This document shows positions 1 through 30,020 of a stretch of DNA of 64,000 nt, one piece after another. Under the pieces are notes generated by a model, which worked only from the letters and a program-made list of their open reading frames with translations, did not search any database and was not told where the DNA came from. This DNA is from Amphiscolops sp. MND2022 (Eukaryota). Within the stretch, counting starts at the first letter, position 1. The number at the start of each line of letters is the position of its first letter. Location of the stretch: the NCBI GenBank assembly GCA_964187785.1, contig OZ076417.1:34224001-34288000 (forward strand). The letters run 5' to 3'. Position numbers and translations under genes: made by a program.

Positions 1-58
1 CGCTCGCGAAAAGCAAAAGCAACAAATACTTTCAAACGTCAGTCAAGATACACAACAT

Positions 59-604
59 GTGCATCAAGAACAAAACAACATGAACGTTTCTGAAACAGTA
101 CAACAGTTATCAGAAGAGGCTCTAGTCGCGCAGCTGAATCTAAATTCAAGGTATCCTACAGAAACGGAGCTCCTTAAAAGCAGTGAAAAAGTGAACGAAT
201 CACGTCAGAAACCGTCCGATCAAGTTTTGTCGAGTTTACTGGAATCTGGCGTCACAGGCGGGAAAGTTGAGAGATCACGACAAATTTTGAAGAAGATTGA
301 AGATTGTGAGCGAACCACAATAGATGACACCAATCATATTATATTATTGGACCAACAAGACACAGGAATCAGTATAGTTGAATTTTTGTCTGCATTACAG
401 GTGAATACTAAACAGTTGCCGAAAAGGTTTCTAACTTTGGTTGAAGTTCTCAGACTTCCGCAATTTTTACTGGCCAACACCTATGCAAGGCACACTAGCA
501 GTCAGAATCAACATCAAATTAGACTTGCTGCCGGTGCTTCGCCCTACAAAAGACAGAAACTCGACAACGAAATCGCAACTAATCAGTGGCTCACGAACTT
601 TTGA
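59..604 (+). CDS. Hypothetical Polinton-associated protein (181 aa)
   Basis: Open frame packed directly upstream of the PHD and integrase genes; no motif I can name. The true start may be ATG 80 rather than the GTG used by the track. Confidence 0.5.
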   Translation: MHQEQNNMNVSETVQQLSEEALVAQLNLNSRYPTETELLKSSEKVNESRQKPSDQVLSSLLESGVTGGKVERSRQILKKIEDCERTTIDDTNHIILLDQQDTGISIVEFLSALQVNTKQLPKRFLTLVEVLRLPQFLLANTYARHTSSQNQHQIRLAAGASPYKRQKLDNEIATNQWLTNF

Positions 605-606
605 GA

Positions 607-797
607 ATGAAAAATAGAAGTGGTTCTGTGGATCATGCAAAACAGGTCTGGGTAAAGGGACAGAGAAAACTCCATCACTTTGGTGTCACGTTTGCGGATG
701 GGTTCACTTCAAATGCAGTGGACTAACGGACAGCAAAGACTATCACGACAATTTCTTGTGCTCCAATTGCAAAAAAACACCGAAAATTGCTAGATGA
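607..797 (+). pseudogene. Small PHD-finger protein (~63 aa) with one 5' frameshift; absent from the ORF track
   Basis: The frame from 621 reads WFCGSCKTGLGKGTEKTPSLWCHVCGWVHFKCSGLTDSKDYHDNFLCSNCKKTPKIAR*, a complete Cys4-His-Cys3 pattern. ATG 607 is one base out of frame. The stop overlaps the integrase ATG (ATGA, 794-797). Confidence 0.72.
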
Positions 798-1735
798 TGA
801 AGTAGACGGAGACTACGCATGCCTTCACAAAAATCCACGATTACTACACCAACCCTAAAAAGAGGTCTGCTTTCGGGGGTAGACTAAACTTGATAAAGGA
901 ATCCAAGTTCCGTCCAAAAGATGTAGAACGTTATTTGAACTCGAGCGAAATTTACACAAAATTCAAACTGACTAGAAAACGTTTTCCACGGTTGAAAGTT
1001 TTTTGCTGTAGGCTGAATGAAATTTGGTCGGTCGACTTGGCTGACATGCAACAGCTGGCAAACAGTAATTCCGCCATCATATATCTATTTGTGACTGTAG
1101 ACGTCCTGAGTCGTTATTTATGGGTTGAACCCATCAAGATGAAAACAGCACAGTCATGTAGAGAAGCGTTGAAAACAATCATTGACAAGAATGAAAGGCA
1201 AAGCCCAGAAAAAATTTGGGTTGACAAGGGACGTGAGTATTCCGGCGACTTTGCTACTTTTTGCAGTCAGAAGGGGATTCAGATTTATTCCACCAGAAGT
1301 GAGACAAAGTCTGCATTAGCCGAAAGAAATATTAGATCTCTAAAATCGTTAATATTCAAATATATGCACGAACATGACCAAAGTAGATATTGTGATAAAC
1401 TTGACCAATTTGTGGCAATCATTAACAATCGGGTGAATCGAATGACAAAGTTAGCGCCGTCTTCAGTTTCAAAGAAAGACGTCAACTATTTAGTTTCTCT
1501 CTGTCACATAAACGCTCAAATGAAGCCAAAGTTCAAAATCGGCCAACAAGTTCGCATTCGACGAAAGATTGACACTTTTCATCGAGGTTACAAAATACAA
1601 TTCACAGAAGAACTGTTCACAATTATAGCAATACCAACTACCAATCCTCCAACTTACGTTGTTAAAGATTGTGACGGCGAAATTATCCAAGGTAAATTTT
1701 ACGAGCCTGAACTCGTGCGATTCGCTCCACATTGA
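794..1735 (+). CDS. Polinton retroviral-like (rve) integrase with C-terminal chromodomain-like region; in-frame stop at 803-805
   Basis: DDE motifs WSVDLADM, WVDKGREY and ALAERNIRSLK. The N-terminus IHDYYTNPKKRSAFGG lies upstream of the track ORF (890) in the same frame. C-terminal PPTYVVKDCDGEIIQGKFYEPEL. Confidence 0.9.
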
Positions 1736-3263
1736 CAGTCTTCAACAATCTAGCGATGGCAGCTCAACTCTAAACACTAGTAGAGGGTTTAACTCAATAC
1801 GATGGTGTGTAAGTATTGAATGTGTGTATATGAATATGAACTATTGGGCATGATAAATGAACAATGTACAATGATAAAAAGAATGAGGTAGTACAATGCC
1901 AAAGACTTAAAAATAAGACGTTAAGATGAATTTCGGACGTCACAATAACGAATGTGTTACATTAGACAATACTGTGAACGTTGTGGATGGCAGAACGGGA
2001 AGAGAACGTCATATGAGTGATGTGACGTGAGTTGGAGAAGCGGATGTATCTTAAGTAGACTGGCTAGAAATTAACTGTTGTTATGTATTGGAAACATGTT
2101 ATATATTTTTGGTTTCTGGACAACGTCTATCATATGAACAAATCGTCGAAACGGAATAGCTAATCAATTTTGCGAAATGTTTACAAGAAAGACCTAATGA
2201 TCAAGTGGGCAGACATAAATTGTGAATTTAAAAATGCTTGATGTATTTTATTGTAACGTAATGAAATTCAGTGACAACCATGTAGTGGCAGGAAAAATAA
2301 ATGTTGCGAAAGTTAATTATAAGCGAAACAAAGTGCAAACTATATGTATGTGTCACATTACCAATCATGATATGAAATATCAAATGCAACTAATTTATAG
2401 TGCATTTTTTTAAAAAAATGTAGCATCATAGCCCGAAACATACTAGGCATTATCACACACTTCAAAGTATTGGCAATGTTAAGAAAAGAAACGGATTGCT
2501 GTTAAAAATTGTAGCCGTGGGAACCTTGTCTTTATTATGCAGACGCAATGAAAATTTTACTGAAATTTAGACAATTGTTATTGATAGCAATCCAGATCGT
2601 GACAAGGAACCGCTCTGACAAATTTGATGAATGTAAATGTGAAACAATAAGTATTTGCATGTAACAAATATGATGAACAGCAAATTTATGGGGTTATGCA
2701 TGGCGCACGAATTGATGAATGTAATGAAAGTAGCACGAACACATAACTACAAATTGTTGCATGTGAAATGTATTGACTATGGAGTGAACACTATGGTAAA
2801 TAAGGTAATGTAAACGTAATTTGGAAATTAATTATGAAATACACTTACACACTGAAAGGTAAAGACAAACGTAAATGTTACCAGTTTGTGTAACGTTGTA
2901 ATTAAACGACGTGTAATGAAGTTGTTATCCATTTTCTAATGTTCGAAGTAAAGAATGTAGATGAAGTAACCTGGACACATGAACCGGAACGTGAATACCG
3001 GTCGCCGCATTATAATGAAACGATTTTGGCAACTTACCATGAACAAAAGTTAGGGATGAAATTATCACCAAAGAGTATAACATTTAAAAGCAGCAACACA
3101 GGGTTTTGGTTTCGGGATTGGATAGGGATGCTTATAGGAATGCTGTAAGTTAAGAAAAAATGAATCTTAAAACAGTCCTCTTGGGTAGAGCCAACATGAC
3201 CCACCTCGGACAATAATGGTTGAACGTTAAATGATTGACAAAATGTTTAAACAAAGTATACTG

Positions 3264-4256
3264 TTAATGGTCAGCATCTGGAGAACCGTACATCATTAAT
3301 TGCTGTTGCTCATTAAGGGGCGCCACAGGAATTATAGCTGAGATGTGATAAGCAAAATTTCCACTGGTGACTCCCTCTTCGTCTATGGCGGGTTTAAACC
3401 ATCCAATGATGCGGACTCCCTGGGTGTTGAAAACATTACTGGCCAAAGCAGTGACTTTGTCTTCCATTTCAAACGTATCGACATTGTCAGAAGAGAGCTG
3501 TTCTGTTCGTTTGTTTGTATGAACTAACAGTTTAGTAAGCGAAGAAGAAGTTATTTCAACGTTTTTCTCCCCCGTAATCCTTTCGTTAAGTTCGTTACAT
3601 GAAATTTTGAATGTGATAGCCCAATGTCGCTTACTCTCAGCCACAATACAAGAACACGGAGGATTTGCACCATGTGCGTCGCACAGTTTTCCTGTGCACA
3701 CATTATCCTTCGGCATGGCTTGAACAATGCGGAAATTGGTAGGCTGGAAATCGAAGAAAACGTAATTGGGCACATTTATGTCATTAGGAGGAGCTTTGTA
3801 AAGTGTCCATCTTGCTGAAGGAATAAGGGGGTCGTTGATGCTGATCAACGGATTTTGCGTCGTTTTGAGGTATCCAATTACTTTAGGGCACAGAACCCAT
3901 ACGGGTGTTCCTGGTGTGATTTGTTGACTGTATCCAAGAATACGACGGGATTCCAGCGAGGTTTGAGTAAATGACAGGAGAACGTGATTAGTTCCTTCGA
4001 CACCGAATATGAGGAAGCGATCGTAGGAGCTGACTTCCTGGTGCCTGACTTTGAATGCGTTCTTAGCAGGCTTGTAATAAGTAAGTTTCTTGGGATTTGC
4101 AGTTGCATATAGGAAAACACATTTTAACTTGTAACGGGATGGCAAATCGTATTCATCACTGATTACTTCGTTGTACTGTTTGGTTTGAAATTTTTGACGA
4201 ACAATGTCTTCAACTTCTTGCAGCGGCTTATCGATTTTGATGTAGCCAATCGACAT
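3264..4256 (-). CDS. Hypothetical 330-aa protein with a Cys cluster (CTGKLCD...CSC); possibly OB-fold/ssDNA-binding-like
   Basis: Uninterrupted ORF. ATG 4256 follows a polypyrimidine-CAG acceptor-like site. The fold suggestion is inference only. Confidence 0.7.
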   Translation of the reverse strand: MSIGYIKIDKPLQEVEDIVRQKFQTKQYNEVISDEYDLPSRYKLKCVFLYATANPKKLTYYKPAKNAFKVRHQEVSSYDRFLIFGVEGTNHVLLSFTQTSLESRRILGYSQQITPGTPVWVLCPKVIGYLKTTQNPLISINDPLIPSARWTLYKAPPNDINVPNYVFFDFQPTNFRIVQAMPKDNVCTGKLCDAHGANPPCSCIVAESKRHWAITFKISCNELNERITGEKNVEITSSSLTKLLVHTNKRTEQLSSDNVDTFEMEDKVTALASNVFNTQGVRIIGWFKPAIDEEGVTSGNFAYHISAIIPVAPLNEQQQLMMYGSPDADH

Positions 4257-4743
4257 GTCTGAAATGTAGGAAAGAAACAAATAACCTAACTGAAGGAATT
4301 TTAATATGACATTAAATGCAAATTAGGTTCCAAAATAACGAATAGACTAACTGCGGCTTCAAAAGACCGTAACAGCTTAAAAATACGAGAACATGCAGTG
4401 GATCAAATGTTCAGCGAAAAATGTGACAATGTAACCCTAATTGAAGAATGTAATAGGAATTGTTTCAGCGGAAATTCACAAAAGTCGTTGGGAAAGACCA
4501 AATGGTGTGTTGCATGTAATAATATGCTGAAAATTTTTCCAAGCGACGCAGTAGATGTCAGGAAAACCGGGTTTATTACGAACAGATCCTTCAATGTATA
4601 AAACGAAATGATCGTCCATTAGCAAGTTCTCATTGTTGAAATTTTAAACTATTCGCTCCGTTTTCGGTCGCTGAAGCTCCCGCAAACTCGCGAATAAACC
4701 GCGTACAGTATTTGGAACATGCTGAAAAGAAAAGTGAAAAGTT

Positions 4744-4903
4744 GAAAAATTTAACTCCTTGAAACAATTGTAAAGTTGAAAAATGATTTACTGAAGAGGA
4801 AGATTACAAAAACAGCGTAATTTGAAAATTTTAACTCCTTGAAACAATTATGAAGTTGAAAAATGGTTTACTGAAGAAGAAGATTACAGAAACAGCGTAG
4901 TTT
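4744..4903. repeat. Tandem duplication, 2 x 80 bp
   Basis: GAAAAATTTAACTCCTTGAAACAATT...ACAGCGTARTTT occurs at 4744 and 4824 with a few substitutions. Confidence 0.85.
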
Positions 4904-5019
4904 AACATTAAACCTTGAAGGAAAGACGTTTGACGGTAAATGTAAACATAAGTCAATATGTAGCTAAATGATGATAAGTTAAAGAACGTTAAAGTGATGA
5001 CAAGGGTCGGTTATTGAAT

Positions 5020-5527
5020 TCAATACAGTTGACCGCAGCAACAGAATACAATGTTACCATAAACACCAGTAGCAGTTAATCTTTTAAATTCAAGCATGAA
5101 ATTGTCGATTCTCATTCCAATGAACAGAAGCTGCTGAACATCACTTTCCAAGGCTAGCCTATCGTTTTCGTGTGTGAAATTGTATGCAAAAGCTGCAAGA
5201 GACCATGGACGTCTATGAATAGGCATAGTGAAGGAACTACCGTAGCCCGAATTATGCTCTTGTAGTCGAACCATAACGCTGCGCTTTGTTTGCCCAACAT
5301 AAATAGTTTTGAAAGATTTGTCTTTGAGGCTGACAAGACAGTAAACGAAGCCATTAGAAACAACTGGAATTTCAACACGAATAGGACGATAATTTAACTG
5401 GGGCCATTGAACTTGAACTCCCGGAAATCTTCCTAATCGTCGAAGCAGGAGCAGCCTTTTGTCGACTTCAATCTCATGTTGGCTGGTAATTGAAAGTATT
5501 GTTTTGATGGTACGACAAGTTTGGTCC
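5020..5527 (-). CDS. Terminal exon encoding a GIY-YIG (SLX1/UPF0213-like) endonuclease, predicted to be spliced to the helicase
   Basis: Translation gives ...SNGFVYCLVSLKDKSFKTIYVGQTKRSVMVRLQEHNSGYGSSFTMPIHRRPWSLAAF...LALESD. The acceptor TTAAC...TTTCACCAG ends at 5528; the donor GTATGT is at 5678; the 151-nt phase-2 intron keeps the frame. Confidence 0.8.
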
Positions 5528-5678
5528 CTGGTGAAATGTATGTTGTTAATTATCTTTTATAATTAAATTATTGATGAAAAGCTATAAATGCCCAAATTTT
5601 AATCATGAAAGTATTAAATGACTTTTTCAGGTGACAGTTGAAAAAATAATTAACAAATTAAATTGCTTGACAACATAC

Positions 5679-8193
5679 ACGTCTCCAACGAAAATAACGT
5701 TGCGCAGATCTCGTACCCTGCTGATAATCACGTACAATTGCGAAGCGAGCCACAGAGTGTATTTTTTCTCTTCCACAGACAATTGAGTAGCTATTTTGGG
5801 AAAAGTATCTCCCATAAGCTTGTGACATGTCAGTGAATCGTAATTCGTGACGGGAATCTGCGTACGACGAACAGAAACTTTTCCCCACTTCATAGCAAAG
5901 CCTGTGACTTTTTTCAGTCTGCATGGTTGCCAATTTAAGTATAATTGTCTGGTAAATAGGTCGGGTGTAGCTATGGCATCTATTTCTGGGGCAATGTATA
6001 ATAATAAAAAAGGTTGAGCATTTGATGGAAGTTCAGCTACTATACCAATCTGTCCTTGGGAAAAGGAATCTGTATTTACGGTGAGCCTGACAACGGAATG
6101 TTTTTTCAGTACAACTTTACGTGGTTCGCGACACTCTCGGTCAAGGAATTTGGTTGCTTCGTCACTCGCTGGCACCCATTGTACACTGGAATCGTTACAT
6201 ATTTCGTCGTCTGCTACATATTGAACAAAAGGTTCACCTGAAGATGAAACTGCAATTTGATAACGATCCATGGCTTCACGCTCAGCGTCTTTGCGTCCAA
6301 AAACTTTCATTGTTGTGTAATCTGTTAGATCATTCCAAGATGGGACGAATGTACAATTTTGACTAATAATGGATGCTATGCGCAAAACGTCATGTTCTGG
6401 AATTGGACGCTGAGTCATCAAGTCCAATAGTTCTTGGCCAATGGGATCCAACATTCTCACCAAAGTAGTTAAAAAATGTATATCGAAACAAAAAAGGAGG
6501 GTGGTGCACAGAAACACGTCTGAGCCATCTATATTTGGCAATTGGTTGGTGTCCCCGTTCGCGATAATTAAAACTCCACCAAAAAGAAGAGAACTGTCAC
6601 GAACCTTCTGTAAAATGAGGTCAACAGTTGCTAACAGTTGACTACTTATAATTCCGATCTCCTCTAACACCAGTACGTCGAGAGACATCAATAAAGCTTT
6701 CCGTTCAGCATGATGATGAAGTTTCTTCAAAGCCTTCTCTACTGCCAAAGTGACATTAGCTCTGTCGTTGGGGTTAGTGCAGAACAGTCTGTGAATGTGC
6801 AGGCAATTGAAATGTTGCGCCCGTCGTGAAGCCAATCCAGTAACATAGCAAAAGAGGCCATTGAGCATGCCGTACAGAAGACAAATTGACGTCAAGTGAC
6901 TTTTGCCAGATCCTGGTTTACCCAGAACTATTTGATTTTTTTGAACCAATCGAGTTTGAATGTAGGAGTCGAGAACAAGTAAAAGTTTGTCAATAATTGA
7001 AGCTTGCTCATTAAACGAACGATCTGATTGGACGGGTAATTTAGTGAATACAGGAACCCAGTGCCCAATTGGCTGTTGAGGATATTGTTGAGGAATGTTA
7101 GTTACGTTGACGGGTTTCAATCGCTGGTATAAACGGTCTTGAGTTTCTGTCAAGAATGATGTAATTGAGCGTTCACATTGGTCAGTGAGATTAGTCATGA
7201 GGACCTCGGGAATACAATTGTTGCTAATGGTGTCGTTCAATACGAGATTTTCGATTGACTGCGCGGCCAAAACAAGCCGATTGGAGAAAGCAGTGTTGCC
7301 TCCAGGAAGGAATTTCAACTCCTCTGTAATGTACCGCGTAAGCAAGTCATCAGCGTCCGATTGAGTGAATGAAGAAGTGGAATGTAAAATACCAGCATCA
7401 ACGAAACATTGACGTAAACTTGTTGAAGCAAACAAATCTAATTCCGTATCGAATGAGCCCATCGTATATAACAAATGAAGCAGAAACTTGGAAGCGTTTT
7501 TTGGAGTGACCTTTGAAAATACCACTTCAGGAGGACAAGGGGATAAATTTGTTGTATCGCATACGTATGTTTCTTTATAATCATGAGTATGGAGGTTTTG
7601 TAAGATGACTTTGAATTGTCCAAGTAATGGATTTGATTGATCTTGTACAGTAGTTAACCACTGCTGTAAGAGTTCCAACGCGGTGGAACGAATTCGAACA
7701 ACACAACCGGTTCCATCAACCCATGGTCTTGGATTTTTCACCAACAAAGAAAAAGAGTTTAATTTCTTTGCTGGCGGACATCTAACGAAAAATTTGTAAT
7801 AGTTGTTCAGTTTACGTACAAAAAACAACTCCGGTGGGCGTATAGAAAATAAAGTAATCCTGTCGATGTAAAAGGGGGACTTCAAAGCGTCTTCAATGTG
7901 TGTTTTTTGTCGCTGCGTAAAACAATTGTACGTTGGAAAATTCAATTGTTCCCTAACAGTGAGTAAATCGTTAGAAGCTCCAGCAGGCCTGCGTTCATTG
8001 GAACATTTGTGAAGTATGCCCCCGCGAAATTCTAGAGCAATTGATGGCACATGAACAAAATGAATGTTTGTGATCACTATTGGTAGCTTCAACATCCACC
8101 ATAAGAACTCTGTCTGAGACACTTGCAGTGCGCTGATTGATGCAGTTGGTCTTTTTCTCTTTTCCTCAAAGTCTTTTCTTTTCGCTGCTCCTG
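5679..8193 (-). CDS. PIF1-family (SF1B) helicase region of the Rep-helicase protein
   Basis: Motifs GKPGSGKS, LASRRA, IHRLF, VLVLEEIG (EE in place of DE), ANGDTNQLP, TCHKLMGDT and QLYVIISRV. The frame stays open upstream of the track start to ~8200, where one base separates it from the Rep frame. Confidence 0.9.
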
Positions 8194-9483
8194 TTATTTT
8201 AAGTTTTGTATTTCAGGCGCTGTCACTGAAAAAGCATTGTCTGTGGTTCCCGGTTTGATGTGTACGCTGGCGTGCTCTTCCTTCCCAGCAGCATATTTAT
8301 TAAGGTATTTTGAACAAAACGTTTCTGTAATCATTTGTACATTACCACTGGAAAGGGTAAGTGCAAACAAAGTCGGGGAGTTAGGCATCAAGTGTTCGCC
8401 TTTGATTGCGGGATATTGATACTTCTGACATTGGAGTTGGCTCCCAGCAGAATAGTTGAAGTCGTCAATGTAATTGACAAGATTTAGCTTCTTCAGAATG
8501 ACTGCAGCTGGGTTGCTATATTTTTGTGGAATGGTTTTCAACCAAAAATCTTCTGATGGAGGATATGGTGGAAACCGGCATTTGGAAATACCAGAGAGCA
8601 AATCAGTCTTGTGGCAACGTTTGTTAACGGCATCGCAATCACGGGACTGGACTCTGACGAATAGATCAAACAGTATTTCAACGTCGTTCCATGTTTCTAT
8701 TAGTTGGAGGTTAGAATGGAAGAGGTTTCGAAACGCGTGTAAAACATGTTTTTTCGTGGAAAGAATCATTCTTTTAATAGTATCTTCGGAATCGGACAAC
8801 CATAAAAGGAAATGATAATGGGGAAAATTAGCCACTGCATCCTGAAATTCTGCTCGTCCCCATATCTTAGTTATGTGACCCAAAATGTGTTCTGAAGAAT
8901 GTAACAAATAATCAATCAAATGCTGAATTGTTTCGTTCCACATTTGAAGCATAATAGGCATGTGAAGTTGAACGGCAGCTTTATACTGTTCGGAGGTTTT
9001 GTCAGGAAACACTTTTTCAATAGCGCGTAACATAGGCGATATTCCAAAATGATGTCTCATATTCAACGTCAATGTAACAAAAAGCGCTGGTTTCTCGGTC
9101 CTCATAGCCTCACCAAGTTCTGCAATGTTGCGCTCAGAGTCAACTAAACTGAAACCAATGGATGAGGGTGGTGATTGAAGTTTGTTACCACGAATTTCAA
9201 TATTATGAACTCCCCGTTTAAAAAACTCTTGAGTTAGTGTTTTCTGTAAACTGATGTTTAGAAGCACATCGGTGAGAAAGAACAGGTAATTGATATTTGA
9301 GGAGACAGATAACTCCAAATTGGTCACCCGAGCAATAGCATGTTGGTAAAAACCGTGAAACCCGTAGGTGGAATTGTCTTTGTCGTCACCCAACAAAAAG
9401 TAAGGCATGGCACCCGTGAAGGAACCGTCCTTCTGTTGATGGTAGAATACACTGGGCGACATCATTGCTTCAGCCTGCAACAA
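8194..9483 (-). CDS. Helitron-type HUH Rep endonuclease region
   Basis: Motif I LFVTLTLN, motif II RAEFQDAVANFPHYHFLLW, a C-x-CRFP cluster and motif III KYLNKY (Y-x3-Y). Confidence 0.85.
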   Translation of the reverse strand: MLQAEAMMSPSVFYHQQKDGSFTGAMPYFLLGDDKDNSTYGFHGFYQHAIARVTNLELSVSSNINYLFFLTDVLLNISLQKTLTQEFFKRGVHNIEIRGNKLQSPPSSIGFSLVDSERNIAELGEAMRTEKPALFVTLTLNMRHHFGISPMLRAIEKVFPDKTSEQYKAAVQLHMPIMLQMWNETIQHLIDYLLHSSEHILGHITKIWGRAEFQDAVANFPHYHFLLWLSDSEDTIKRMILSTKKHVLHAFRNLFHSNLQLIETWNDVEILFDLFVRVQSRDCDAVNKRCHKTDLLSGISKCRFPPYPPSEDFWLKTIPQKYSNPAAVILKKLNLVNYIDDFNYSAGSQLQCQKYQYPAIKGEHLMPNSPTLFALTLSSGNVQMITETFCSKYLNKYAAGKEEHASVHIKPGTTDNAFSVTAPEIQNLK

Positions 9484-12324
9484 AGAAACGACCTGACCGG
9501 GATGGCAAGCAACGAGATTTTGGAAGATTTTCGCAAGTATTTCTTTGATAATTGCAGTGGACTTTGCGGTCGTTTGAAGGCGCCAAGGATACCGTTAAGA
9601 AATAAGTGGAATGGAGCATGACTGCTCTGGTTCCTGAACAATCGGTAAATGGGTTGTTGCTTCCGTCTCGCCGAATGACTCAAAAGGAAAACCTGTCTCT
9701 TCAATACCAACGAAAAGTTCACTGGAAGTGGAATCACAAGCTGTTATGGAGGCTGCTGTTGATGGAGATATACTTTGAGATTGTGATCCGGTTGACGTAC
9801 TGGACACGACGCTGCTCTGCGAATCAGGACATGGGAGAGGAGGTGCGTCAATGAAAAACTCATCGTATTGTTCCGATAAAGTTTTAAAGTGATTTGCGCA
9901 AACACTGCCTGGGCATGAATCAGAAGGACAACGCCAGGCTGATTTCTTATTGCAACGATTAATGGAGCAGGAGAACTTGCTGAGCTTTGTATCAACTGTA
10001 AATGGGAATCGGTGGCAAGTGCATTTGAAAATGTTTTGGCCGCCAAAGAACAACAATGACTTCGTTGCGGCAGACAAAGGATGATCAAGAGACTGATAAA
10101 TAAGAAGGTTCCACGTACGGTTGAACCTGTGTAAAATTCTTTCGTCTCTTTAAAACTTTGAAAAGACGGACAGTGAACGTGCCACCAACCTTCGAAAGTT
10201 GGACTGTACCTAAAAACGAAAGTCATGGAATCTTCAGCCAATGCAAGCAACAGTGAATAAATATTGTCATTACTTTGAACGAGCAAAGGAAATGGGGAAG
10301 CTCTGGAATCGTCTTCGGAACAAATGACAGCAAACATGGATATGGAAGCATTTCGAATCTCGGGAAAGAGGTCGGTTACGTTGTTTCGTATAAGATTTCT
10401 CTGGGGTAAATAATAACAAGCGGAAGAATTATTTATTTCGAAGAAATAATTCATGATTGACAAGAAGTTGGACGTTACAAAATTTGGCATCGCAAAAAAT
10501 GTGACAAATTCGTCCATCAATTTAGCCGTGGCAGTGGAGTTAACACCAGGCGGTTTGGAAGAGCTGTTGGCAAATTTACTAAGTGTTGCAATATATTTCT
10601 GGCTGTTGATGTTCTCCAACAAGCAATGACCCAAGAACTCTAAATGACTGTGGAAGAAAACAATAATAGACACGGCGAAGTGAATTTGGCAGAATACTTT
10701 AGAAAAGGAATAAGGTTGAATACCGTGCTTGTGATCAGAATGCAAAAGTAGAAGAGACGGTGGTATGGAAAATGTCTTCGAAAAGGTTGAATCTAAATAC
10801 AGTTTGATGCTGGCCAAAGAGAACAACGATAACTTTGAACCTGACGAAACGTGGTGTGTAATTAACTCTGCAGGAACAGGCGCTACGTTTCGGGCGATAG
10901 AATTGAAGAAGTCTTCGTTAATTTCGTTGGAGTTCAACAAATGTGTCAACAAACTTCGAACGTCTTTCCTGTTGTTGTACACTAAGGATTCGTTTCTAGG
11001 TAGAAGGTTGTCACTTTTTACGTTGTAACATCTTAAGGATGTTAACTGTAGCGAACTTATCCCATCGTAACCACCCTTGCTTGTCGCCAGTGTATACGTG
11101 TGAGAAAAAGTGCCAACTTTCATGGGTGTGACATTTCTTGGCTTAGAATTCAACAAAGAGAAACGATCGGCAAATGGATGGAGAAGATTACCCAAAGGTG
11201 ACGTGGGAACGTGAATCATGTTCTTATTGAGGACATTATGAACTCTGCAAGTTTTCAAAAAGACGCCTTTAGTGTTAACCTCCAAATGAGGCGCACAGAT
11301 GAAACTGTCCAAATGGTTAGATGACTGAAAGAAATCAGACCTGATAGCCCTAATTTTTTTTGCAATCAGCACCAAAACTGACAAAGTCTGGAATCAAAAG
11401 GTTTAACACGTGGACAAAAGACACGTTCGAACAACATCCTATAAGGGCTGAACAACCGGCAGGACACTTTATAAATGGAAAAGCAAATTTGTCCAACAAG
11501 AACTTCAAATTGTGACATTTGTATTGTGCAAGCAACGCGGTAAACTCCTGATATTTCAAACCAAAATCCTCAAACAAATGGGTATTTCCATCGGGTAAAG
11601 GGAAATTTTGTGAGGCTGCCTTTTCCCAGGAGGCCCGCAACTCGGGGGGAAGTAAGGTATAGAAGTATTGGCCATTAATTTTGTATTTGCCAGGGAAAAA
11701 AATAAGGGTACAAAACACTGTTGGCCAGGCATAACTCCAAACGTTCTTTTGGAAGTATTGCCTGCACAATCCGCATACTGTAATTGTGCGCCCACTACGG
11801 ACGTCGTTGAGAGAAACATGAGTTCCAAATTGTCTTCGAGAAAGGTGAGTGCCCAATACAAATGTTGCTAAAGAAAGCGGATAAAATGCTGTGTTTTGTC
11901 GCCAGCAAATACCGCAGAGGTCATCAGTATGCACACATGTGTACGCAGAGTGGGAGCCAGTTTTGAAATAGTCCATTTGGAATACGAATTCAGTGTGGTA
12001 AGTTGAAACAGTTGATTGTGACACAGAAGCATTGAGATGTGCTGACGAAGACACATCGTATTCCAGGTTATCTGATCCACGTGAAACATCGTTTCCACCA
12101 TTATCGAATTGTGGACGATTTCTGGGCGAAAGATTCTGGTATTCGTGGACAAGAGGAAAGTGTGAAACATTAATGAAATCAGCAGTTGGTGAATCATGTC
12201 CATTGGCAATATTTTCAGGGCCATCGACTACAAAAGTGTCTTCTGTGTTATCATGGTTACATGGCACAGATGAAAACCTCCCAGTTGAATCTCTAACAAC
12301 CTGTCGCTTTTTAGGCATTTTCAT
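9484..12324 (-). pseudogene. ~900-aa Cys-rich N-terminal region of the Rep-helicase polyprotein, split by frameshifts
   Basis: Overlapping ORFs 11350-12324, 9744-11384, 9595-10077 and 9462-9737 join by single-base shifts, one in an 8-T run near 11354-11361. Cys clusters CGIC...CGLC and CTCH...C...C...C...CANH. Confidence 0.62.
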
Positions 12325-14115
12325 GCAATACCACTATATGCCACCTAAGTTATAACTATAATGGGTAGACATTCTGTAGGCATAGCGACATCAACGTAGG
12401 ACACAACAAAATGCAGGCATTGAGCACAGAAATTAGAGGTTCACAGTTTTGGTGAAGGGAGAAACTTGTATGTATTGGTATACGCGACTAAAAACGTAGT
12501 AAATGAGACAGAAAGAAGGTTTGGGAATTAATCCAAATACTGACGCCACCTAAGTGTTAACTATTGTGGGTAGACGCAATTACAAGGTTCTTTATGAAGA
12601 GCATCAATTCTAAATACATAGCAGGTGAGTAATGTGAAGATTAGAAACCAAAGCGTGCGCCACATTGATTAATACAATTTAAATAAGGCACAAAAACATG
12701 AGCGAAAGTTTCAGTCAATCAGCAAAGTCGTCAGGATTCCAGCAAAAGTGTAGCAGCACAGATGAAATTGGCAATAATGGCAAGTTCTCTGGTGACATTA
12801 CTGTAACGCGAGCATATCACTGAAAAGATTTGTTTATGTAACAGAAAGGTAGGTAAAAAAACCAAAGATGTTTATACCGTAATTGTTGAAGTAAAAGAAA
12901 AAGACCTTGAAATAGAATACATATACGTATTCAAAAGTAATTGCCAACCACGTGCAATATTTTGTTTAAACAGAGGTGGACAAGTAAACGAAACAAAAGA
13001 ACCTTGTTGAAATGAACCAAAAAATAGCAATAATTCAGGAAGTTATGCGAAAAATGTGTTGTCTGTGTTCTATTGGATTGAAACGTATCGGATAAAAAAA
13101 GCAAAAAAAAATATCACGGATGTTTTAAAAATTCTTGTAAAAATTTGTAGAAGTAATTTTCTACAATTGAAACGTATTATCTGGACACGTTTTTTCGAAC
13201 AACAATTGCTAAAAACATTGTAACAGAGATAAAGTTAACGAACGGTCCTACCATAAGAAGAACAACGGGCATTAGGTCGATAATGTGGCAACCTATAATG
13301 GGTGAGCCTTGGAGGTCCACCTAAGGTCATTTTAATTATTAATGAAATTAAAACACGTAACACATACCAAATTGTTAATTTGATTGCTACAAAACAAATC
13401 AAGTATTCAATTGAACAATTAAACAAACACTTACAAGAGATTGCATTAAAAATCAGGTCATTCATCGATAAACAAATCTTGAAAACGCAACACAAGTGGA
13501 GGAAAGTAGCATCATAATGGTAATAAAATGCAATCGGATTTACACAAGGTAACTATTGCTTATACTACTTACAATAAAATGAAACAACCAATGTTACAGC
13601 AATGAAGCAACGTCATTGTTAATGTTATTTTGAAGCATCTGTAAATGGTTACAGCTGAAATTTTTTAAATTCTCTATATTGAAACGAGTGACTCTTTTTG
13701 AATGGGGTACAGAAATGGATAATTGAAAAAGTTAGAATGATAATGTAATTGAAAACAACGTTATTTTCTTTATAAATGAAGTAACAGGGATATCATGATT
13801 GTTTTATCGTTAGGAAACAGATTAGGAAGGAGTAACCATTTTTAAGCCAACATAGAATTCGGTTAAAATGAATGTTTTTTCATAGCTTGAACACCGTAGC
13901 TTCTAAAAGAAGCAAAGAGTGTTAAAATAACTTGTGAGAATGTGACAGAACGATGTAACAATGATAAAACTGTGGCCAAAAGTTGCAAAGCAAATGAAGA
14001 CATTGAATCATAATATGTCTAAATGAAATGCACGAGCACATGTGACAAGAAAAAAATCAATGGTCATCTACATGATGAAAAAACAGGGAGACTTTCATCA
14101 TTGAAACGTGTGAAC

Positions 14116-15042
14116 CTAATACCGTCGTATAATTTTTTTCTTCAATAAAGCTTGTAGGTTGAAAATGCCAATGGTAGTCAAGTGTACTCCATCTGCCTCG
14201 TAAATATTTTTGTTATTCATTTTTGATCCAGGACCGTGGTAGATATATCCATGCTGATATGCACGATCATGCAAAATCTGATTAAGAGAGCTGATTGGTT
14301 CATAGTAGAGGGGATCTGCTCGCATTAAAACACCAACAACGTGGATGGCATCGACGAAGGCACTGATTCTGTAGACCTGAGCAACAATTTGCTTGAAGAC
14401 CTGAAACAAAAAATACATTATAATCCGATATGTACTTGGCAACAATGTCAGCAAATGTGAAATTGTTATTTCATTAGAAACATAGTTTCGAGATGTTCCA
14501 ATTGTTATAGGTGATGTGAAGATAATTAACAAGCAAATTGATCACATCTGTATGCCATGAAAATGAAACTTTGTTGTAAAAACGACCAATGCCAATAAAG
14601 CGTGGAAATTGACTTAAGTACACTATGCGAAGCCTATTGTGGGTGAGCCGCATGGACCCACCTAAGGCTGACAAGGAATATCTCGTGATGAATATTTCAT
14701 TTGTTAAAGGGTTAACAATATTAAATGTGAAGTACATGTCAAGTAATAAAAAAAGACACAGTCAATAATTAGAAAAACATATCGTTGAAAAATGTGCTAC
14801 GTTATACTTGAAAAACTTACTGCCTCCGGAGAATCAGCTGGCCGACCTTTCCACTGCTTGAGACCGTTGCCTCCGATGAATAAAATAGCCTGCTGGTATT
14901 GACCACGTTGAAGTCCCTCGATGGCATTAGTTAAACGATGGTCATTAGCTCTGGCTCCACTGAATGCAATTACATTAGTTTCGGGCAAAGACAAAGACGC
15001 TGCCGTGGAGTCGGACAGCAACAGAAATTTAGAAATTGACAT
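14116..15042 (-). CDS. SGNH/GDSL-type hydrolase (168 aa), two exons: 15042-14821 and 14400-14116
   Basis: Blocks LLSDS, FSGARA, FIGGN and DGVHL are all present. Donor GTAAGT at 14820, acceptor TTTGTTTCAG at 14401, both phase 0. Confidence 0.75.
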
Positions 15043-15199
15043 AGTTTCTGGAAATACTTCTCAGGGTTACTTGGACAGATAAACGTAAGCATTGCGAAAA
15101 TTGTGTTTAAAAAATACGAAAATTGTTTTTAAAAAGTTCAAATTTAATGTAATAAAATGAAGTCAGCGTTAAACATAGCCAAAGCTTTTCAGAAGCACT

Positions 15200-16350
15200 G
15201 TACAAGTGTACTGATTGGTTTTTGGGCGTCACTGTGGCACACTGGCATTTTTCACCTTATGGTTGAAGACCGTTAGGAGCGTTGTTGGGCAGAAATGGGC
15301 TATCGGTAAGTCCGAGTCGTGCAAAAAAATGCTACATACCATCTCTTTGCATTTTATTCACGCCATGCAGCATATATTGAAAACTTTTTATAACCATTCA
15401 ATAGACCAGTGGCCCACGTTCATTTTTGAAAAAGTGACTCATGATGCTATCTGTAGTCTGCGAGGAGATATGCATACCCGAAATGTTGTTACGATGTGAC
15501 ACTATAACTCTCGGACCCACGTAAAAATTCGAAATTCTTTCTGAAGCTTCCTACCAGTGTTCTGATGTGTTTTTGGGCGCCACCATGTCACACTGACAAA
15601 TTTTGATCAAAAGGCCCGAGACCGTTCGGACCGTTCCTAAAGAGAAAATCACGTTTTTGTAAGTCCGAGTCGACATGAAAAATTGAAAACAACACTTCTG
15701 AAAATTTTTTCCTTTCACTATGGCAACTAAGGTATGATGTTTGCACTCAGTCGTTAGACCGCTGCCCCATGTTCATTTTCATAGAGGTGACCCACGGTGC
15801 TATCTGTACTCAGTTATGAGTAACATGATTATGAAATGTTCATACAACGTAACAGATCAACTCGGACCGTGACTCAAAAAAATCAAATTTTTCCAGAGGC
15901 CTCTTAGAGGTCAACCGATGTCATTTTGGTCGTCACAATAGCTCACTGACAATTTTTGGTTATATTGTTAGAGACCGTGCGGCCCGTTGTTGACAAGGAA
16001 GTCACATGTATCGAAATATGAGCTGATTTACAAAAAAATCATTCCTCACTATAAGGCATTTTTTGGCACCACTATTGCCCCAGGCCTATTTTGCGATAGT
16101 ACCGTGAGTAGACCCCAGCCCCTTGATCTTTTTCATAAATATGACTTCCGCTGCTACTGGTGCTGCATAGTGAGTACTTTAATGAAATGTACATTATAAA
16201 AAATTTCATCCTAGCTCATCATGCCATACACTAAAAAAATCGACTTTTTTAATATGAACCTTACACGTGTATAAACTACATTTTTGAAACCCTCATTGAA
16301 TGCTGACAATTTTTGATCTTATGGTCCGAGACCGTTCGGACCGTTTAACG
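15200..16350. repeat. Diverged ~355-bp tandem repeat, about 4 units
   Basis: The anchor TTTTTGG...CACTGACAAWTTTTG...GAGACCGTTCGGACCGTT recurs near 15212, 15563, 15917 and 16278. Confidence 0.65.
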
Positions 16351-19964: not shown

Positions 19965-22900
19965 TTAAAAATTATGAATACTACCTTCAGTAGATGCAGG
20001 AATAGCATAGTGGCCATAGGCGAGGGAATGGATACCATCGTCCAAAAGGTAACGTTTGTCGTCGAAGGACGTCAGGGCAACTTTGTCTACTGAATTAACA
20101 ATGATTTGATGGTTGACATACCTCAACTGAGTCATCTTTTTGCTGATTGATTTTTTGCTCAAAAGACACTCTTTGAAAATGTTGTGATTGAGAGTTTTCT
20201 TCACTGCCTTGCCGACACCTTTAGCACTCTGCTTTTTACCCCCGACAAAGTCAATGCTGTACAATTTTGACCGGAGGCACACTACTTCTCTAAGGATTTT
20301 GCCTTGAAGTTCATCTGTCATGGTCAATGGTACTTTCTTATTTGTTGGATCGTAGAGAAAATGTTCTCGAGGGTAGTCGGACAAGTCCAACAGATGTTTG
20401 AAACTAGCCATGTCCTCGTAAAAGTTTACAGTTTTAATGCAGTAGAGAAAAGAATCAGTGTCTTTGTAGGCCACTTTCAGTCTGTCTGCGGAATAGCGGG
20501 GAATCATCTCCTCGTAATGGAACTTGTATAGAGACAGCTTTGAGAGATCCAGTATTGAGGCCCCAAATGCAGTTGGTTTATCCCAAAGAACAGTGGTAGA
20601 CTTGAAGGAAACTGTAACTAGGTTTTCACTTATAATGTGAAAAGCCTTGAAAGCGGCACTGTTAACAAAAGATTCTGCTTCCTCAACATTCGTGAGGAAT
20701 CGAATGTTACTGTGTTTGCGCAGATTCTCCATCGTCTTTCCAAAGCAAGCATTGCTCATCAACTTGAAAAAAGCTATCTCGAAGTCGTTTTCGGCTTGTT
20801 TGCGCATTGTTGTATTTTTTTTTCTATATACGCTCCCAACCATCTACTTTGCTGGAACTGACAAACTCGATGTAACTTCTCAACAATCAATCCATGCTTC
20901 ACATAATATTTCAAATTTTCATATTGGCAAACATAGTTTTTCTTGTCGAACAATGTTTCCACCAATTTGGCGGACTTGTTGGGCTGCACTTCGAAAGTTT
21001 TCGCATAGTCGGAGAACCAAGACGAACGAATTTCGAGTTTTTCTGGCGCTAGAGGCAATCCATTGTGAATGTCGTGCAAGTGTTGAGGATACTTTAAGTC
21101 GACTTCAACAAAATATCCCACGCTTGAATCTTCAGGTGTTTCAAGTATTTCTTGCAAAGTGATTGTAGAGTTCCAGATGTAATCGCACCTTGGCATCAGT
21201 TTCTGCCTTGTACCTGCGTACAAAGAAGTAACATCGAAAAACCCACCAAAGGTAGTAACTTCGTTTCGATCATAATCACTCAACATTGAATTGTTCGCCC
21301 TGAATTGTCTAACATCACCAACTCCATTAACTCCCCCACGAGTGCTCCTTTCAAAAAATAGAAGTTTGTCAATGTCATCGAGTAAACTCAACTTGGCTTC
21401 TGTTGATATAAGCATGGCATCCCAACTCAAGTTGGGCGCTGAGTAAAAGTGAGACGGATCAAGCTTGTAGACGTTCATGCATTCTTTTCTGAATTTCTCA
21501 AAAATATCGGCCAGCAGGAATACATCTGTTTCCAAGTAAATGTCGTGGTAATCGCCTAAATTTTGGCAAGAGAAGGCGTTATAATGCTAACTGCATCATC
21601 GAAATCTTCTGAAGTAATGTCTATGGATCCAGTCAAGGAGTTCCTCCAGGCATCGCCGAACGGTGGCAAGGCTACATCAAACTTCTGTAAACTATCCAAA
21701 AACTATACGGGAAATGTCCCTTCTTTGTAAGTTTCTGGAACAAATCATCTGTCACATGGGAAGAGTGTCGGCGGAGTAGAACAAAGTCTTTTAGTTGCAC
21801 AGTCTTGGCTAAAGAATCGAGACTTTGCGACATGAATTGCAAACTGTCCAAGAACCTCAACGAATGTCGTAAAGTTACAAACTTGTTTCTTTTATCTTTG
21901 TAGCTCCCCACAGGTACCGCTATGCTGAATGATGTGAATGTTTCGTCGGTTCTTGCAATAGCTGACAATTTTTCTCCCGCGAGCAACCTTAAGTTTTTAA
22001 GGATATGGTGCGAATCATAAGGAGAAAGATTGTGAAAAAAAATTGGCAGAAACTTTGTGGTTTGTGCCCGCAGGTTACAACTGGAGTGAGCAACACCAAA
22101 AATTATGCCTGTTACGTGGCAATGATGAATTACTCGATTTGACACTTCAGAAGCTTTGTGACAAATGCAGCACTCAGCTGATGGCGCCGACAAAAGTATT
22201 TTTCTCTGCGTTTTACACATCTTTAGGAATCTGAATTTCTGTTTCGATAACTCCAATTGCACCAATCTCGTAAAATTGAAAGCAATTTTTCGATGCAATT
22301 CGGTCCTCTGTAGAAAGACTCCTTGATTACACCACCCGCTGAAAATGAAAATTGAAAATTTTTTTAAATGGCTAAGGCAGTATTCGAGACAAAGTTCTAC
22401 AAACCTTTAGCATCCACAAGAATGGCACCGTAGCTAGCTGGATATTGCTCCACTTCTCGGGTTTTCAACTTGCAACCAATTGAGCCCATTGAAGGCACAT
22501 TTATGGCTTCCAAATCGGCCTAAACTATGAAGGGATTCCATTGTGTTTTCTGCCAGTTAGTGAATTCAATAACGCGTTCTTTGTCTGGCATTCGAATTTC
22601 CAAAGGGGCATTGCTTTCACAAAATTTCAAATGTTTTTCCATGTTCTGTTCCAAGACGGGTTGATAACAATTTCGACAAAACCGGCTTTTTGGTCCCTTT
22701 GCTTGCTTCTTTGGTGATCTTGATAAATGGTGAATGATGTTTGAAAAGTTTCTAATCAAACAATAGTGTCTCTTCTTCTTCCCTTCGATTAAGCGCAAAA
22801 GATCCACCCTTCGTTTGAACTTTTTGTTTTTGCTGTTGTAAACGTTGACCAGTTTGTTACCATCCAATTGATACACATAGATCTTACATTTGTTTTGCAA

Positions 22901-23802
22901 CTCGAACGATCGGATACCAGAGAGTGGCATTGGCATTTCACTTGCATTGAACTTCAATTTTTGAACATTTTTCAGATGTGTCTTCAGCCTGAATGGACGT
23001 CCAACAAAAGAAAAAGAGAAGAGAGCTGCAGCAACGCAGTATATGAAGCACAGGTTGTCTTTCTTATTGATGATGTTCAAAAGACTTCGACTCACTTTCT
23101 GGAGAATAGCTGGAGTCTCAATGTAAGAGCCACATTTAGCTGTTTTCAGTTCGAAACGCATCAATTTTTCCACAACCCAGCCCGAACCACCGGTAGCGAA
23201 AACATTCACCCGGCTAATTAGCTGATCAACATGCTCCATATACTCTTCGGTCAGCCTCGCCATGTTAGAATTAAAGTAAGCTTCGGTTGATTCTTCAACG
23301 ATGGGTTTGACCAATCCAACACTGATTGAGAATCCTATTTTAACACTCGCAGTTGTGTTCAACAAGGAATTCACGAAACGCAAAATATTGTCTTTCAAAA
23401 AATCAAACAGTTGAAGGGGTCAATGAAAGAGGCATTTCCTGTTTCAACTCGATGAATTTGAAAGCGGGTATTCAATGCTCTTGTAGTAATTTCAACCACT
23501 TATGACTCTTCAGCAACACGCGATCGAGATGAAATTGCCATTTCATGGTCATTTTCGTGATCATTGAGAGTTGTTGAACAGCCAAAGAAAGTGGGACAAG
23601 AAGAACATCGGTAGTGGCCATTCAAATGATGTTGCGAACGTAGATGTCTCAAAAGATTTTTGACCTGGGTGAAACCAACAGAACCTTGTCCACATTGGAA
23701 AGCTTTGGCATTTCGAGACCCATCGAAGTGCTTGGTTTTGATATGATTTGTTAGTGATCGTTGTGAAGTCAAAACCTTCCCACATTGGTAACACGAGTAC
23801 AT
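19965..23802 (-). pseudogene. Protein-primed family B DNA polymerase with N-terminal C2H2 zinc fingers and an Endonuclease-VII-like insert; several frameshifts
   Basis: Fragments 23500-23802 (C2H2), 22520-23398 (GSGW...SYI, NLCFIYCVAA), 21672-22298 (HHCHVTG...AHSSCNL, FFHNL, FLDS), 20774-21535 (DVTSLY) and 19965-20843 (KLMSNACFGK, YKDTDS, LRSKLY). Confidence 0.92.
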
Positions 23803-24364
23803 TTCAGATCAAAATCTTTCACATCTATAGTCCCTTTCAAAGTATTGTGAAAACACGCTTTCGAAGCAACATGCAAAAAATTTTTATAGGTCAAAAAAAC
23901 ATTGATGCGAAGAATTCCACAATAACTACTAATTGAAAAGCTTCAGATCGCGAAAAAGCCTCAAATCTAATTATGCCTATCGATGTCTTAGTCTGTAGTT
24001 TTAATTATGTCGCAACATTTTTTTTCTTTGAATGGGGACTATGGTTTAATTGCCAAGAGAAGCCTTTTTAGTTTATTTTCTAGTTTTTCAGAATTGGGAA
24101 GAAAAGTTCATAACACTGATTTTCGAAGGTTATGCGAAGTTAGATATACATTGTAACTTCGTTCAATTAAGCAAAATGATATTTTGTATAATGTTTTGTC
24201 TCAGTTACTTTTGCTTCATGTAGAATAAGGTTGAATGCATTTGATAAGAAATCAGAAAGTGACACAGAAATGTCAGCTCAGTTTACTTTGTTCAGTTTCG
24301 GTTTCCAACAGAGAAATTCAAACTAAAATTTTGAACAGTGAATGAAATTTGACAGCCGAGTGGT

Positions 24365-24579
24365 AAAATATACAAAAGTTGACAGTTCAAACAAAATGAA
24401 TATACAACAAATATACAACAAAATATACAAAAGTTGACAGTTCAAACAAAATGATCTTTGACTTTTCTGACTTAGAAAATTTCCGGTTTGGGAGCCCAAA
24501 ACGTGCATTGAAAATCTTCGAAAATTTTCTAAAGAGCCAAAAACGTGCATAACCCCCCCGCCCCCCGTCTATTACTACT
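24365..24579. repeat. Polinton right terminal region (presumed TIR) with a 35-bp direct repeat and AGTAGT terminus
   Basis: AAAATATACAAAAGTTGACAGTTCAAACAAAATGA at 24365 and 24420, then a C-rich tract and ATTACTACT ending at 24579. The partner TIR is not in the window. Confidence 0.62.
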
Positions 24580-29420: not shown

Positions 29421-30020
29421 CGGCTATAGTGTATATTACATTTAAAATGGAAAGTGGAAGGGTGTCGAGTCTCAATTATTTCTTGCAATGATCTATATAC
29501 GTTTCCGATGTATTCTTTTAGTTGAACAAACTTAACAAAAACCGTTGCGAGAAGAAACTTGGACAAACTGCACAAGAGGAATAAACGAGTGACTGTAAAA
29601 GTCGTGCTTTTTTATTCTAACAGCACCTACTAAAAAAGCATTGAAACGGCTAAAGTCGGCGCTCCGCTTGAGGCGAAGGGGCGGGCCAGGCAGGCTGCGT
29701 GAATAGAGTTTGTACAGAAAGTCGATAATATTGAGTTCTGTGGTCTGCAGAAAAAACTGGTCACCGTAATAGCCGGGCACATAAAATGCGTCGATTAACC
29801 AAAAAGGTAGTGTACTAATTCATGTTCGTTTGTCGCTGATGATTTTCTCCACCTAAGGGTTAAGATGTTATTGCTTCAGAAATAAAATTTTGCGGATTTG
29901 TTTTTATTTTCCGCCCCCGCAATTTGTGTAGGGGGAGGAAAATCACCATCTGTGTAGCGTTTTCCCAAATTCTGCCAAATCCCCAGTTTATTACTGAATT
30001 TAGTATGTGGATATTTCAGT

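Follow-up and report, generated by a model that had tools for sequence, protein, structure and literature searches.

A Helitron-like transposon of Amphiscolops sp. with a probable spliced Rep-helicase carrying a C-terminal SLX1-type GIY-YIG nuclease

Helitron-like elements (HLEs) have been grouped into two classes, HLE1 (the canonical Helitrons) and HLE2 (Helitron2 and the Helentrons), with apurinic endonuclease (APE) and OTU domains reported only from HLE2 (PMC11417382; PMC3627910). A GIY-YIG domain has been mentioned for one HLE2 family, HelenSM92 of Sphagnum magellanicum, in a single sentence of the HELIANO study of 2024, where it is called 'captured' and found besides the RepHel (PMC11417382). 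Outside this group, Penelope-like retroelements have a GIY-YIG domain at the C-terminus of their replication enzyme, which is thought to nick the target (PMC6431247, PMC12910113). Here, we analyze a Helitron-like element located in a stretch of 64,000 nt from Amphiscolops sp. MND2022 (assembly GCA_964187785.1, contig OZ076417.1, positions 34,224,001 to 34,288,000 of the forward strand), which is termed the window throughout; all coordinates refer to it. We give a probability of roughly 0.8 to the reading that the region 12324-5020 on the minus strand holds the coding sequence of an autonomous Helitron-like transposon, and that its spliced Rep-helicase ends in an SLX1-type GIY-YIG nuclease. An earlier note, made from the sequence alone, had proposed such a fusion through a hidden intron. 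The gene is organized as follows.

12324-5679 and 5527-5020, minus strand: transposase gene, two exons
5679..12324, minus strand: exon 1, with a Cys-rich N-terminal region, HUH Rep, a long conserved linker and a PIF1-like helicase; ATG at 12324
5528..5678, minus strand: spliceosomal-type intron of 151 nt, phase 2, GTATGT...TTAAC...CAG
5020..5527, minus strand: exon 2, 168 codons plus stop, with a helical linker followed by the GIY-YIG domain

The helicase frame enters the predicted donor as AAC GTT ATT TTC GTT GGA GAC GT/GTATGT (a slash marks the splice site), with the donor GT at 5678-5677. The acceptor reads ...ATTAACAACATACATTTCACCAG/G, with its AG at 5529-5528, and a TTAAC branch-like site is found 17-22 nt upstream of the CAG ending at 5528. 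Splicing joins GT and G to a Val codon followed by DQTCRTIK..., and 168 open codons precede the TGA at 5022-5020. Without splicing, the helicase frame stops at 5627-5629, 17 codons past ...RNVIFVGD, and these 17 residues have no homologue. The G+C content of the intron interval is 23%, compared to 41% for exon 2. Each sequence detail that the earlier note had given for the 151-nt phase-2 intron (5678-5528, the D-V-DQTCRTIK junction, the stop at 5020) could thus be confirmed.

Relatives of the helicase ORF (open reading frame) with 45-49% identity are located on long ENA metagenome contigs. Exon 2 aligns to ORFs further downstream in two of them, L001 (13803-14321; 42% identity, E 1e-40) and L002 (12604-13119; 37%, E 3e-36), and both alignments start directly behind the predicted acceptor, with the first residue of the exon. 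Such homology to diverged relatives excludes chance. The intron is found at the same codon and in phase 2 in L001 (AG/GTTAGT...TTTAG, 184 nt), L002 (AG/GTAAGC...TTTAAG, about 75 nt), L005 (192 nt), and L006, with lengths ranging from 75 to 192 nt among the relatives. Between L001 and L006, the exons are about 70% identical and the introns cannot be aligned. L006 has an intact ORF of 2,177 aa, which runs from the N-terminal region through Rep and helicase up to the donor AG/GTATGT, so that the intron is the sole interruption of this gene. Ten further ORFs of the intron-bearing clade (see below) stop right after FVGx(K/R), 2 to 21 codons inside the intron, and sister lineages continue through the same site with FVGxK-x-TLxAI... 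in one ORF. Taken together, this comparative evidence is strong and, as far as sequences can tell, the intron is real and evolutionarily conserved; position and phase shared by four relatives, together with the ten ORFs ending at this site, bear out the hidden intron suspected before.

Since prokaryote-style gene callers list a small separate ORF in related contigs, exon 2 could also be regarded as a downstream gene of its own, translated independently and never spliced to the helicase. We consider this highly improbable. The homology begins exactly past the acceptor, and the first in-frame ATG (5274) comes only after both the GIY and the YIG motifs. Moreover, the sister lineages hold the same residues within a continuous ORF, and the phase and position of the intron are conserved.

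The domain encoded by exon 2 contains the following features.

5131-5352, minus strand: SLX1-like GIY-YIG nuclease domain
5329-5352, minus strand: GFVY motif
5287-5304, minus strand: IYVGQT motif
5245-5271, minus strand: VRLQEHNSG motif
5203-5214, minus strand: RRPW motif
5143-5157, minus strand: LALES motif

Exon 2 alone matches the Pfam family PF01541 (GIY-YIG) with 25.1 bits (cut-off 22.6; E 2.2e-5). We used an alignment of 25 family sequences (A1) as exon 2 profile against the PDB and obtained At-HIGLE (7wme, E 2.7e-12) and yeast SLX1 (4xlg, E 2.4e-11); bacterial UPF0213 proteins matched more weakly. The AlphaFold model of exon 2 has a mean predicted local distance difference test score (pLDDT) of 87, reaching 93-98 over the domain, and the best 11 Foldseek matches of this model in the PDB are all SLX1 or At-HIGLE (probability 1.0, template modelling score 0.35-0.53). 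These proteins (7wme, 4xlg, 6sei, 7cq3) are therefore the best match to exon 2 both in sequence and in fold, and they share with it the pattern GxxY...YIGxT...RLxQHN...RPW...FE and the catalytic Tyr, Arg, and Glu. The residues Y62, Y76, R87, H91, N92, and E127 (exon numbering) of the window correspond to the motif residues of SLX1, and their order and spacing agree as well. Judged by sequence and predicted fold, exon 2 encodes an SLX1-type GIY-YIG domain (SLX1/URI-like branch of the superfamily) in which no catalytic residue is missing; the GIY-YIG assignment made from the motifs was upheld by the Pfam match, the PDB profile search, and the fold match alike. SLX1 has an additional C-terminal zinc-finger domain (RING/PHD-like), which binds SLX4. 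The PDB alignments of the exon 2 profile span the SLX1 nuclease domain only, and the window protein lacks an SLX1-type zinc finger, ends about 40 residues past the nuclease core, and is fused to a transposase. The window nuclease is not an SLX1 orthologue.

Exon 1 carries the features of a rolling-circle transposase.

9850..10125, minus strand: Cys-rich zinc-finger-like segment 5' of Rep
8194..9483, minus strand: HUH Rep endonuclease domain
9061-9087, minus strand: Rep motif 1
8800-8826, minus strand: Rep HUH motif, FPHYHFLLW (HYH)
8281-8313, minus strand: Rep two-tyrosine motif, YLNKY
5679..8122, minus strand: PIF1-like helicase of superfamily 1
6896-6922, minus strand: Walker A
6653-6679, minus strand: Walker B with EE, DVLVLEEIG

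Between 12324 and 5020, the minus strand consists of a series of long ORFs, and exon 1 is collinear with uninterrupted relatives of 2,400-2,800 aa over its entire length (tblastn). The Pfam family Helitron_like_N matches the ORF 9483-8194 with 26.9 bits, slightly under the cut-off of 28.9; the relatives reach 32-39 bits. The Rep residues H167, H169, Y336, and Y340 are invariant across the alignment A2. A Pfam PIF1 match covers the helicase on the ORF 8122-5627, and the family profile matched PIF1 structures and Helraiser (7lcc) in the PDB (E 1e-25 to 2.5e-22). The element of the window thus has both an HxH, two-tyrosine Rep and a PIF1-type helicase downstream of it, as is characteristic for Helitron-like elements. 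The cysteines of the segment 9850..10125 are kept in the alignment with L001 and L002, and a Pfam scan of this segment gave no family match. Accordingly, the HUH Rep, the PIF1 helicase with the EE in its Walker B motif, and the Cys-rich N-terminus were all found on the minus strand, as listed in the earlier note. Its product size of ~2,400 aa is close to our sum (about 2,215 plus 168, hence about 2,380 aa), which is reached only if five frame breaks are read through. These breaks, which the note implied by its wording 'frameshift-repaired', were placed with three-frame views and alignments to the relatives.

8195..11365, minus strand: span of the five frame breaks of exon 1
about 11355-11365, minus strand: frame break, A8 run
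about 10125-10180, minus strand: frame break
about 9615-9625, minus strand: frame break, forming a compensating pair with the next
about 9520-9535, minus strand: frame break, A4 run, second part of this pair
about 8195-8215, minus strand: frame break, A runs, in the Rep-helicase linker

Three of the five breaks sit in A runs, and no further in-frame stops were seen in exon 1. Rep and helicase are encoded by a single ORF in L001, L005, L006, and all long relatives, and are separated by a frameshift in the window; the one ORF of L006 spans all five places that are broken here. The copy in the window is either a young dead copy or affected by assembly indel errors at homopolymer runs. For the break near 8200, a tiny intron or a programmed frameshift was considered and dismissed: L002 breaks elsewhere in the linker and L001 reads through it. 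Breaks in this A-rich stretch were therefore treated as independent indels.

The fusion of all three domains is not restricted to the window. An exhaustive HMMER search with exon 2 gave 307 matches at E up to 0.001, and among the best 150 of them are 15 proteins of 1,340-2,811 aa with the match at their extreme C-terminus. Two of these long proteins, P0026 and P0187, contain Helitron_like_N, PIF1, and GIY-YIG in one ORF according to Pfam; the others scanned along with them show PIF1 and GIY-YIG, with a sub-threshold Rep match. The long fusion proteins can all be aligned collinearly with the window element, over a range of about 12300 to 5026. Further protein searches added about 30 clusters of 2,200-2,850 aa, some of which hold up to 165 member sequences, and returned almost solely family members besides the Helentron P0213 and two HLEs bearing DUF6570 (P0233, P0234). 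Altogether, over 30 related proteins of 2,300-2,850 aa combine the N-terminal region, Rep, PIF1, and GIY-YIG in a single ORF. Every match stems from ENA, JGI or Logan assemblies, NCBI and UniRef contributed none, and the only annotation on any of these proteins is 'predicted GIY-YIG superfamily endonuclease'. On one carrier contig, the neighbouring genes encode a cohesin-loader and FtsZ, from which it follows that intron-poor eukaryotes are among the carriers. APE (PF03372) was without a match in the window pieces and in nine scanned family members, while the Helentron P0213, which served as control, shows PF03372. Hence, the architecture predicted from the window alone, with Rep, PIF1, and GIY-YIG in one protein and GIY-YIG instead of APE at the C-terminal place, is realized as uninterrupted ORFs in many relatives. 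An N-terminal OTU cysteine protease domain was detected in P0220 (284-379), P0228 (129-242), and P0229 (11-102) with 27-29 bits (Pfam cut-off 23.3), and weakly in P0026 and P0084; the Pfam scan of the window and its close relatives revealed none.

We subsequently placed the window in a maximum-likelihood helicase tree of 35 rows rooted with the Helentron P0213. All eleven intron-type sequences, including the window, form one clade with a support of 99 in the Shimodaira-Hasegawa-like approximate likelihood ratio test (SH-aLRT). This clade is nested among intron-less Rep-Hel-GIY-YIG proteins, and a single change of state suffices to explain the distribution. Therefore, the nuclease domain is ancestral and the intron was gained later, and only once. 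GIY-YIG is found in frame and at the same place even in lineages with a Rep-helicase identity of only 25-30%, indicating that the domain is as old as the family. Overall, this is a large family with Rep, PIF1, and GIY-YIG that is essentially undescribed as such.

These data also bear on the question whether the GIY-YIG exon is simply a passenger, namely a piece of an SLX1-like host gene that a single Helitron family picked up, as Helitrons often do, and that plays no role in transposition. The HELIANO authors used the word 'captured' for the domain of HelenSM92, the closest match of exon 2 is eukaryotic SLX1, so that an original host-gene origin is probable, and several lineages have lost catalytic residues. 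Ordinary captured fragments, however, decay and are lineage-specific. In contrast, the domain described here keeps its in-frame place across the 25-30% identity lineages, retains the catalytic set in all deep lineages, and shows a ratio of nonsynonymous to synonymous substitutions (dN/dS) of 0.05-0.10 across L001, L005, and L006, so that exon 2 is under purifying selection in the relatives. We therefore regard a mere passenger as unlikely.

Several observations weigh against the proposed spliced Rep-helicase-nuclease. The residue at the splice junction is Val in the window, but Lys or Arg in the relatives, and exon 1 of the window ends in GT instead of the usual AG. Splicing is predicted from the comparison of sequences. 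Because of the five frameshifts, the window copy's own product cannot be made as assembled. Neither the element ends nor the target site were found in the window. Finally, the catalytic Arg and/or Glu are replaced in L001, L002, L005, L006, P0007-P0012, P0121, P0144, and P0205/P0208/P0209, which covers much of the intron clade (L001, L002, L005, L006, P0007-P0012) and its sister group (P0121, P0144). Since the domain is conserved despite these losses, a non-catalytic role is possible, and the nuclease mechanism would not apply family-wide. An Arg located one helix turn further (SRHN) might serve as a stand-in for the lost catalytic Arg.

The latter losses raise the possibility that the GIY-YIG fold is not used as a nuclease but for binding DNA or as a structural module, and might recognize, for instance, branched DNA or hairpins of the element. 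It would fit P0205/P0208/P0209 and the numerous intron-clade and sister-group members in which the exon is still under strong purifying selection without Arg and/or Glu. But the full catalytic set is kept in the window, its nearest exon relative P0006, the P0187 group, and every deep lineage. Retention over such a long divergence is unexpected for a purely structural module. For the family as a whole, we think that only a small chance is left for this explanation, if a slightly better one than for the passenger. Compared with it, we prefer a nuclease at the end of the spliced Rep-helicase; for those lineages that lost Arg or Glu yet conserve the exon, the substitution pattern points to an additional, non-catalytic role.

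Downstream of the transposase, the element has a second gene, and a short motif is repeated upstream of the transposase start.

3264..4280, minus strand: second gene, 338 aa, beta-rich, with four invariant cysteines, conserved in the family
12341-12349, 12546-12554, 13317-13325, 14658-14666, minus strand: four exact CTTAGGTGG copies on the coding strand, upstream of the gene

Downstream of their transposase, L001, L002, L005, and L006 have ORFs with 46-54% identity to the second gene product, and the ORFs beside the transposase in L007 and L008 are 30-33% identical to it; the identity is 21% in L004, where the ORF lies upstream of the transposase. In L001, L005, and L006, the gene is broken into two parts around residue 140; a further intron is the probable cause. 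We obtained no Pfam match for it even at E 5 and no PDB match, and its AlphaFold model (pLDDT 42) is too poor for use. An RPA-like role was considered as a guess, for which we found no support. An 80-bp tandem duplication (4739-4903) lies between the two genes of the element.

All four CTTAGGTGG copies fall within 2.3 kb upstream of the ATG, and each is paired with an ACCCAyyATAG element. From the base count, about 0.5 exact matches would be expected in the whole window. One more exact copy is present at 29849-29857 (minus strand). The four copies are spaced 205, 771, and 1,341 nt apart, as if they belonged to short tandem or non-autonomous units. CTTAGGTGG and ACCCAyyATAG form an imperfect inverted repeat, of which one copy folds well, giving a predicted hairpin at 14628-14672 (z = -3.2), and the others do not. 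Upstream of the element, at 15187-16345, are three diverged units, each about 352 bp long.

The relatives give a clearer picture of this motif. CT(T)AGGTGG is found on the coding strand in 25 of its 26 occurrences there. In L007, which belongs to the intron-less subfamily, arrays of 1,436-bp units (1-9001 and 21064-27104) flank the autonomous copy. Each junction of these tandem units is CTAGGTGG, preceded by CCCCCTAG about 22 nt before the junction and upstream of a 10-nt palindrome. The motif also occurs at both borders of the 12-kb autonomous unit, where the 3' side reads ACGTGCACGT-CTAG/GTGG (here and below, the slash marks the unit junction). A spacing of about 1.43 kb, as in L007, is likewise seen for the motif in L002. 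Two further contigs of the intron-less subfamily, L008 and L009, each contain two head-to-tail autonomous copies 12.7-13.4 kb apart. Such head-to-tail copies and constant junctions, which are seen in the relatives only, match the traces expected from rolling-circle replication. By comparison with them, CTTAGGTGG probably marks the junctions of short tandem units or the site that Rep recognizes in them. The window contains no second copy of the element, no close copy was found in the metagenome contig collection, and an inverted-repeat scan of the window returned only chance-level pairs. The 3' end of the element lies below 3264 and may be cut off by an integrase-bearing element.

How does this family compare to the described systems? 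The Helentron P0213 (DUF6570-Rep-PIF1-APE-OTU) is likewise one large polyprotein in which Rep and helicase are followed, on the C-terminal side, by an extra DNA endonuclease, and Helentrons also form tandem arrays and have hairpin-forming motifs near the unit ends. But the nuclease at this position is APE in the Helentron and an SLX1-like GIY-YIG here, and OTU is C-terminal in the former and N-terminal in those members of our family that have it (P0220, P0228, P0229). P0213 aligns with the family in the helicase core only, with 17% identity. Unlike the Helentron, the family has its own long N-terminal region, a Rep-helicase linker of roughly 600 aa, and the accessory gene of 330 aa. Canonical Helitrons (HLE1, Helraiser 7lcc) share the HUH motif, the YxxxY tyrosines, and the PIF1-type helicase in one protein, but are without a C-terminal nuclease, and Helraiser matches the family profile in the helicase core only, no better than cellular PIF1 proteins do. 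The junctions of L007 and L001, which read hairpin-CTAG-GTGG-TC (...hairpin...CTAG/GTGG-TC...), resemble the 3' hairpin plus CTRR and the 5' TC of HLE1, whereas CTTAGGTGG of the window does not fit the CTRR of HLE1, which inserts between A and T. HLE2 in the wide sense has short asymmetric terminal inverted repeats and hairpins at either end, and inserts at T/T; the imperfect inverted repeat of the window and the CCCCCTAG with its palindrome in L007 are no more than suggestive of such termini. Penelope-like elements, compared by description only, resemble the family in their C-terminal GIY-YIG fusion, but use a reverse transcriptase in place of the Rep-helicase. HelenSM92, again compared by description only, shares GIY-YIG and RepHel; there the domain is called captured in one family, here it is an old, widespread, in-frame, C-terminal domain. 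HelenSM92 was the only published Helitron-like element with GIY-YIG found in our literature search on Helitron with GIY-YIG, SLX1, and RepHel. Whether the architecture had been catalogued before was a concern of the earlier note, and this remark on one moss HLE2 family (PMC11417382) slightly reduces the novelty.

The same note had proposed a distinct rolling-circle lineage. This part holds insofar as the family is large and deeply diverged and has an N-terminal region, an accessory gene, and a junction motif that are all its own; it may lie inside or outside HLE2. It is conceivable, though we would not favour it at present, that these elements represent a third major eukaryotic rolling-circle lineage beside Helitron1 and Helitron2/Helentron, which would then be defined by an ancestral SLX1-derived GIY-YIG domain on RepHel, the 330-aa accessory protein, and the CT(T)AGGTGG origin or junction motif.

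As a working model for transposition, Rep would nick and covalently bind one strand at the conserved end containing CT(T)AGGTGG, and the helicase would peel off the nicked strand. The SLX1-like domain could supply a second DNA-cutting activity beyond that of the single-strand-specific HUH site. SLX1 itself cleaves flaps, forks, and junctions, and the most likely substrate of the domain would be branched DNA, a flap or a nicked duplex, either at the donor or at the target. By analogy, we infer a role comparable to the one proposed for APE in Helentrons and for GIY-YIG in Penelope-like elements. The earlier note had suggested target nicking or the resolution of intermediates, and both are still hypotheses.

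The remainder of the window is transposon-rich and has no evident host gene; the ORFs neighbouring the element all derive from other mobile elements. An ORF run on the minus strand (19965-23398), in which the ORF 21672-22298 matches Endonuclease VII and an organellar/viral-type type-B DNA polymerase, is probably another large mobile element. ORFs with an integrase core domain and reverse-transcriptase fragments are found on the plus strand at 890-1735, 25832-26425, and 60678-61802. Tandem Repeats Finder reported a satellite of 436-438-bp units with 96-97% identity at 43889-48430, and the uniform composition from about 39000 to 54000 suggests a repetitive block that reaches well past it. An Rfam scan of the window gave no match.

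It is unclear how Helitrons cut the second strand and the target, since the HUH site acts on single strands. Helentrons had suggested one answer with their APE nuclease. A second, unrelated nuclease at the position of APE suggests that an extra cutting activity is needed in general. The family described here offers a new system to address this idea, with the catalytically degenerate lineages as natural controls. Because the scores are near or below the standard cut-offs of the Rep and PIF1 profiles, its members are likely to be missed or mis-annotated in genomes, for instance under the label 'predicted GIY-YIG superfamily endonuclease'. The clade-wide intron of the transposase gene is a useful marker for dating and tracing the elements. 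If a third lineage is indeed at hand, some eukaryotic genomes would hold it in abundance although curated protein databases lack it, and its transposition would include a structure-specific cutting step for which no description exists in any Helitron.

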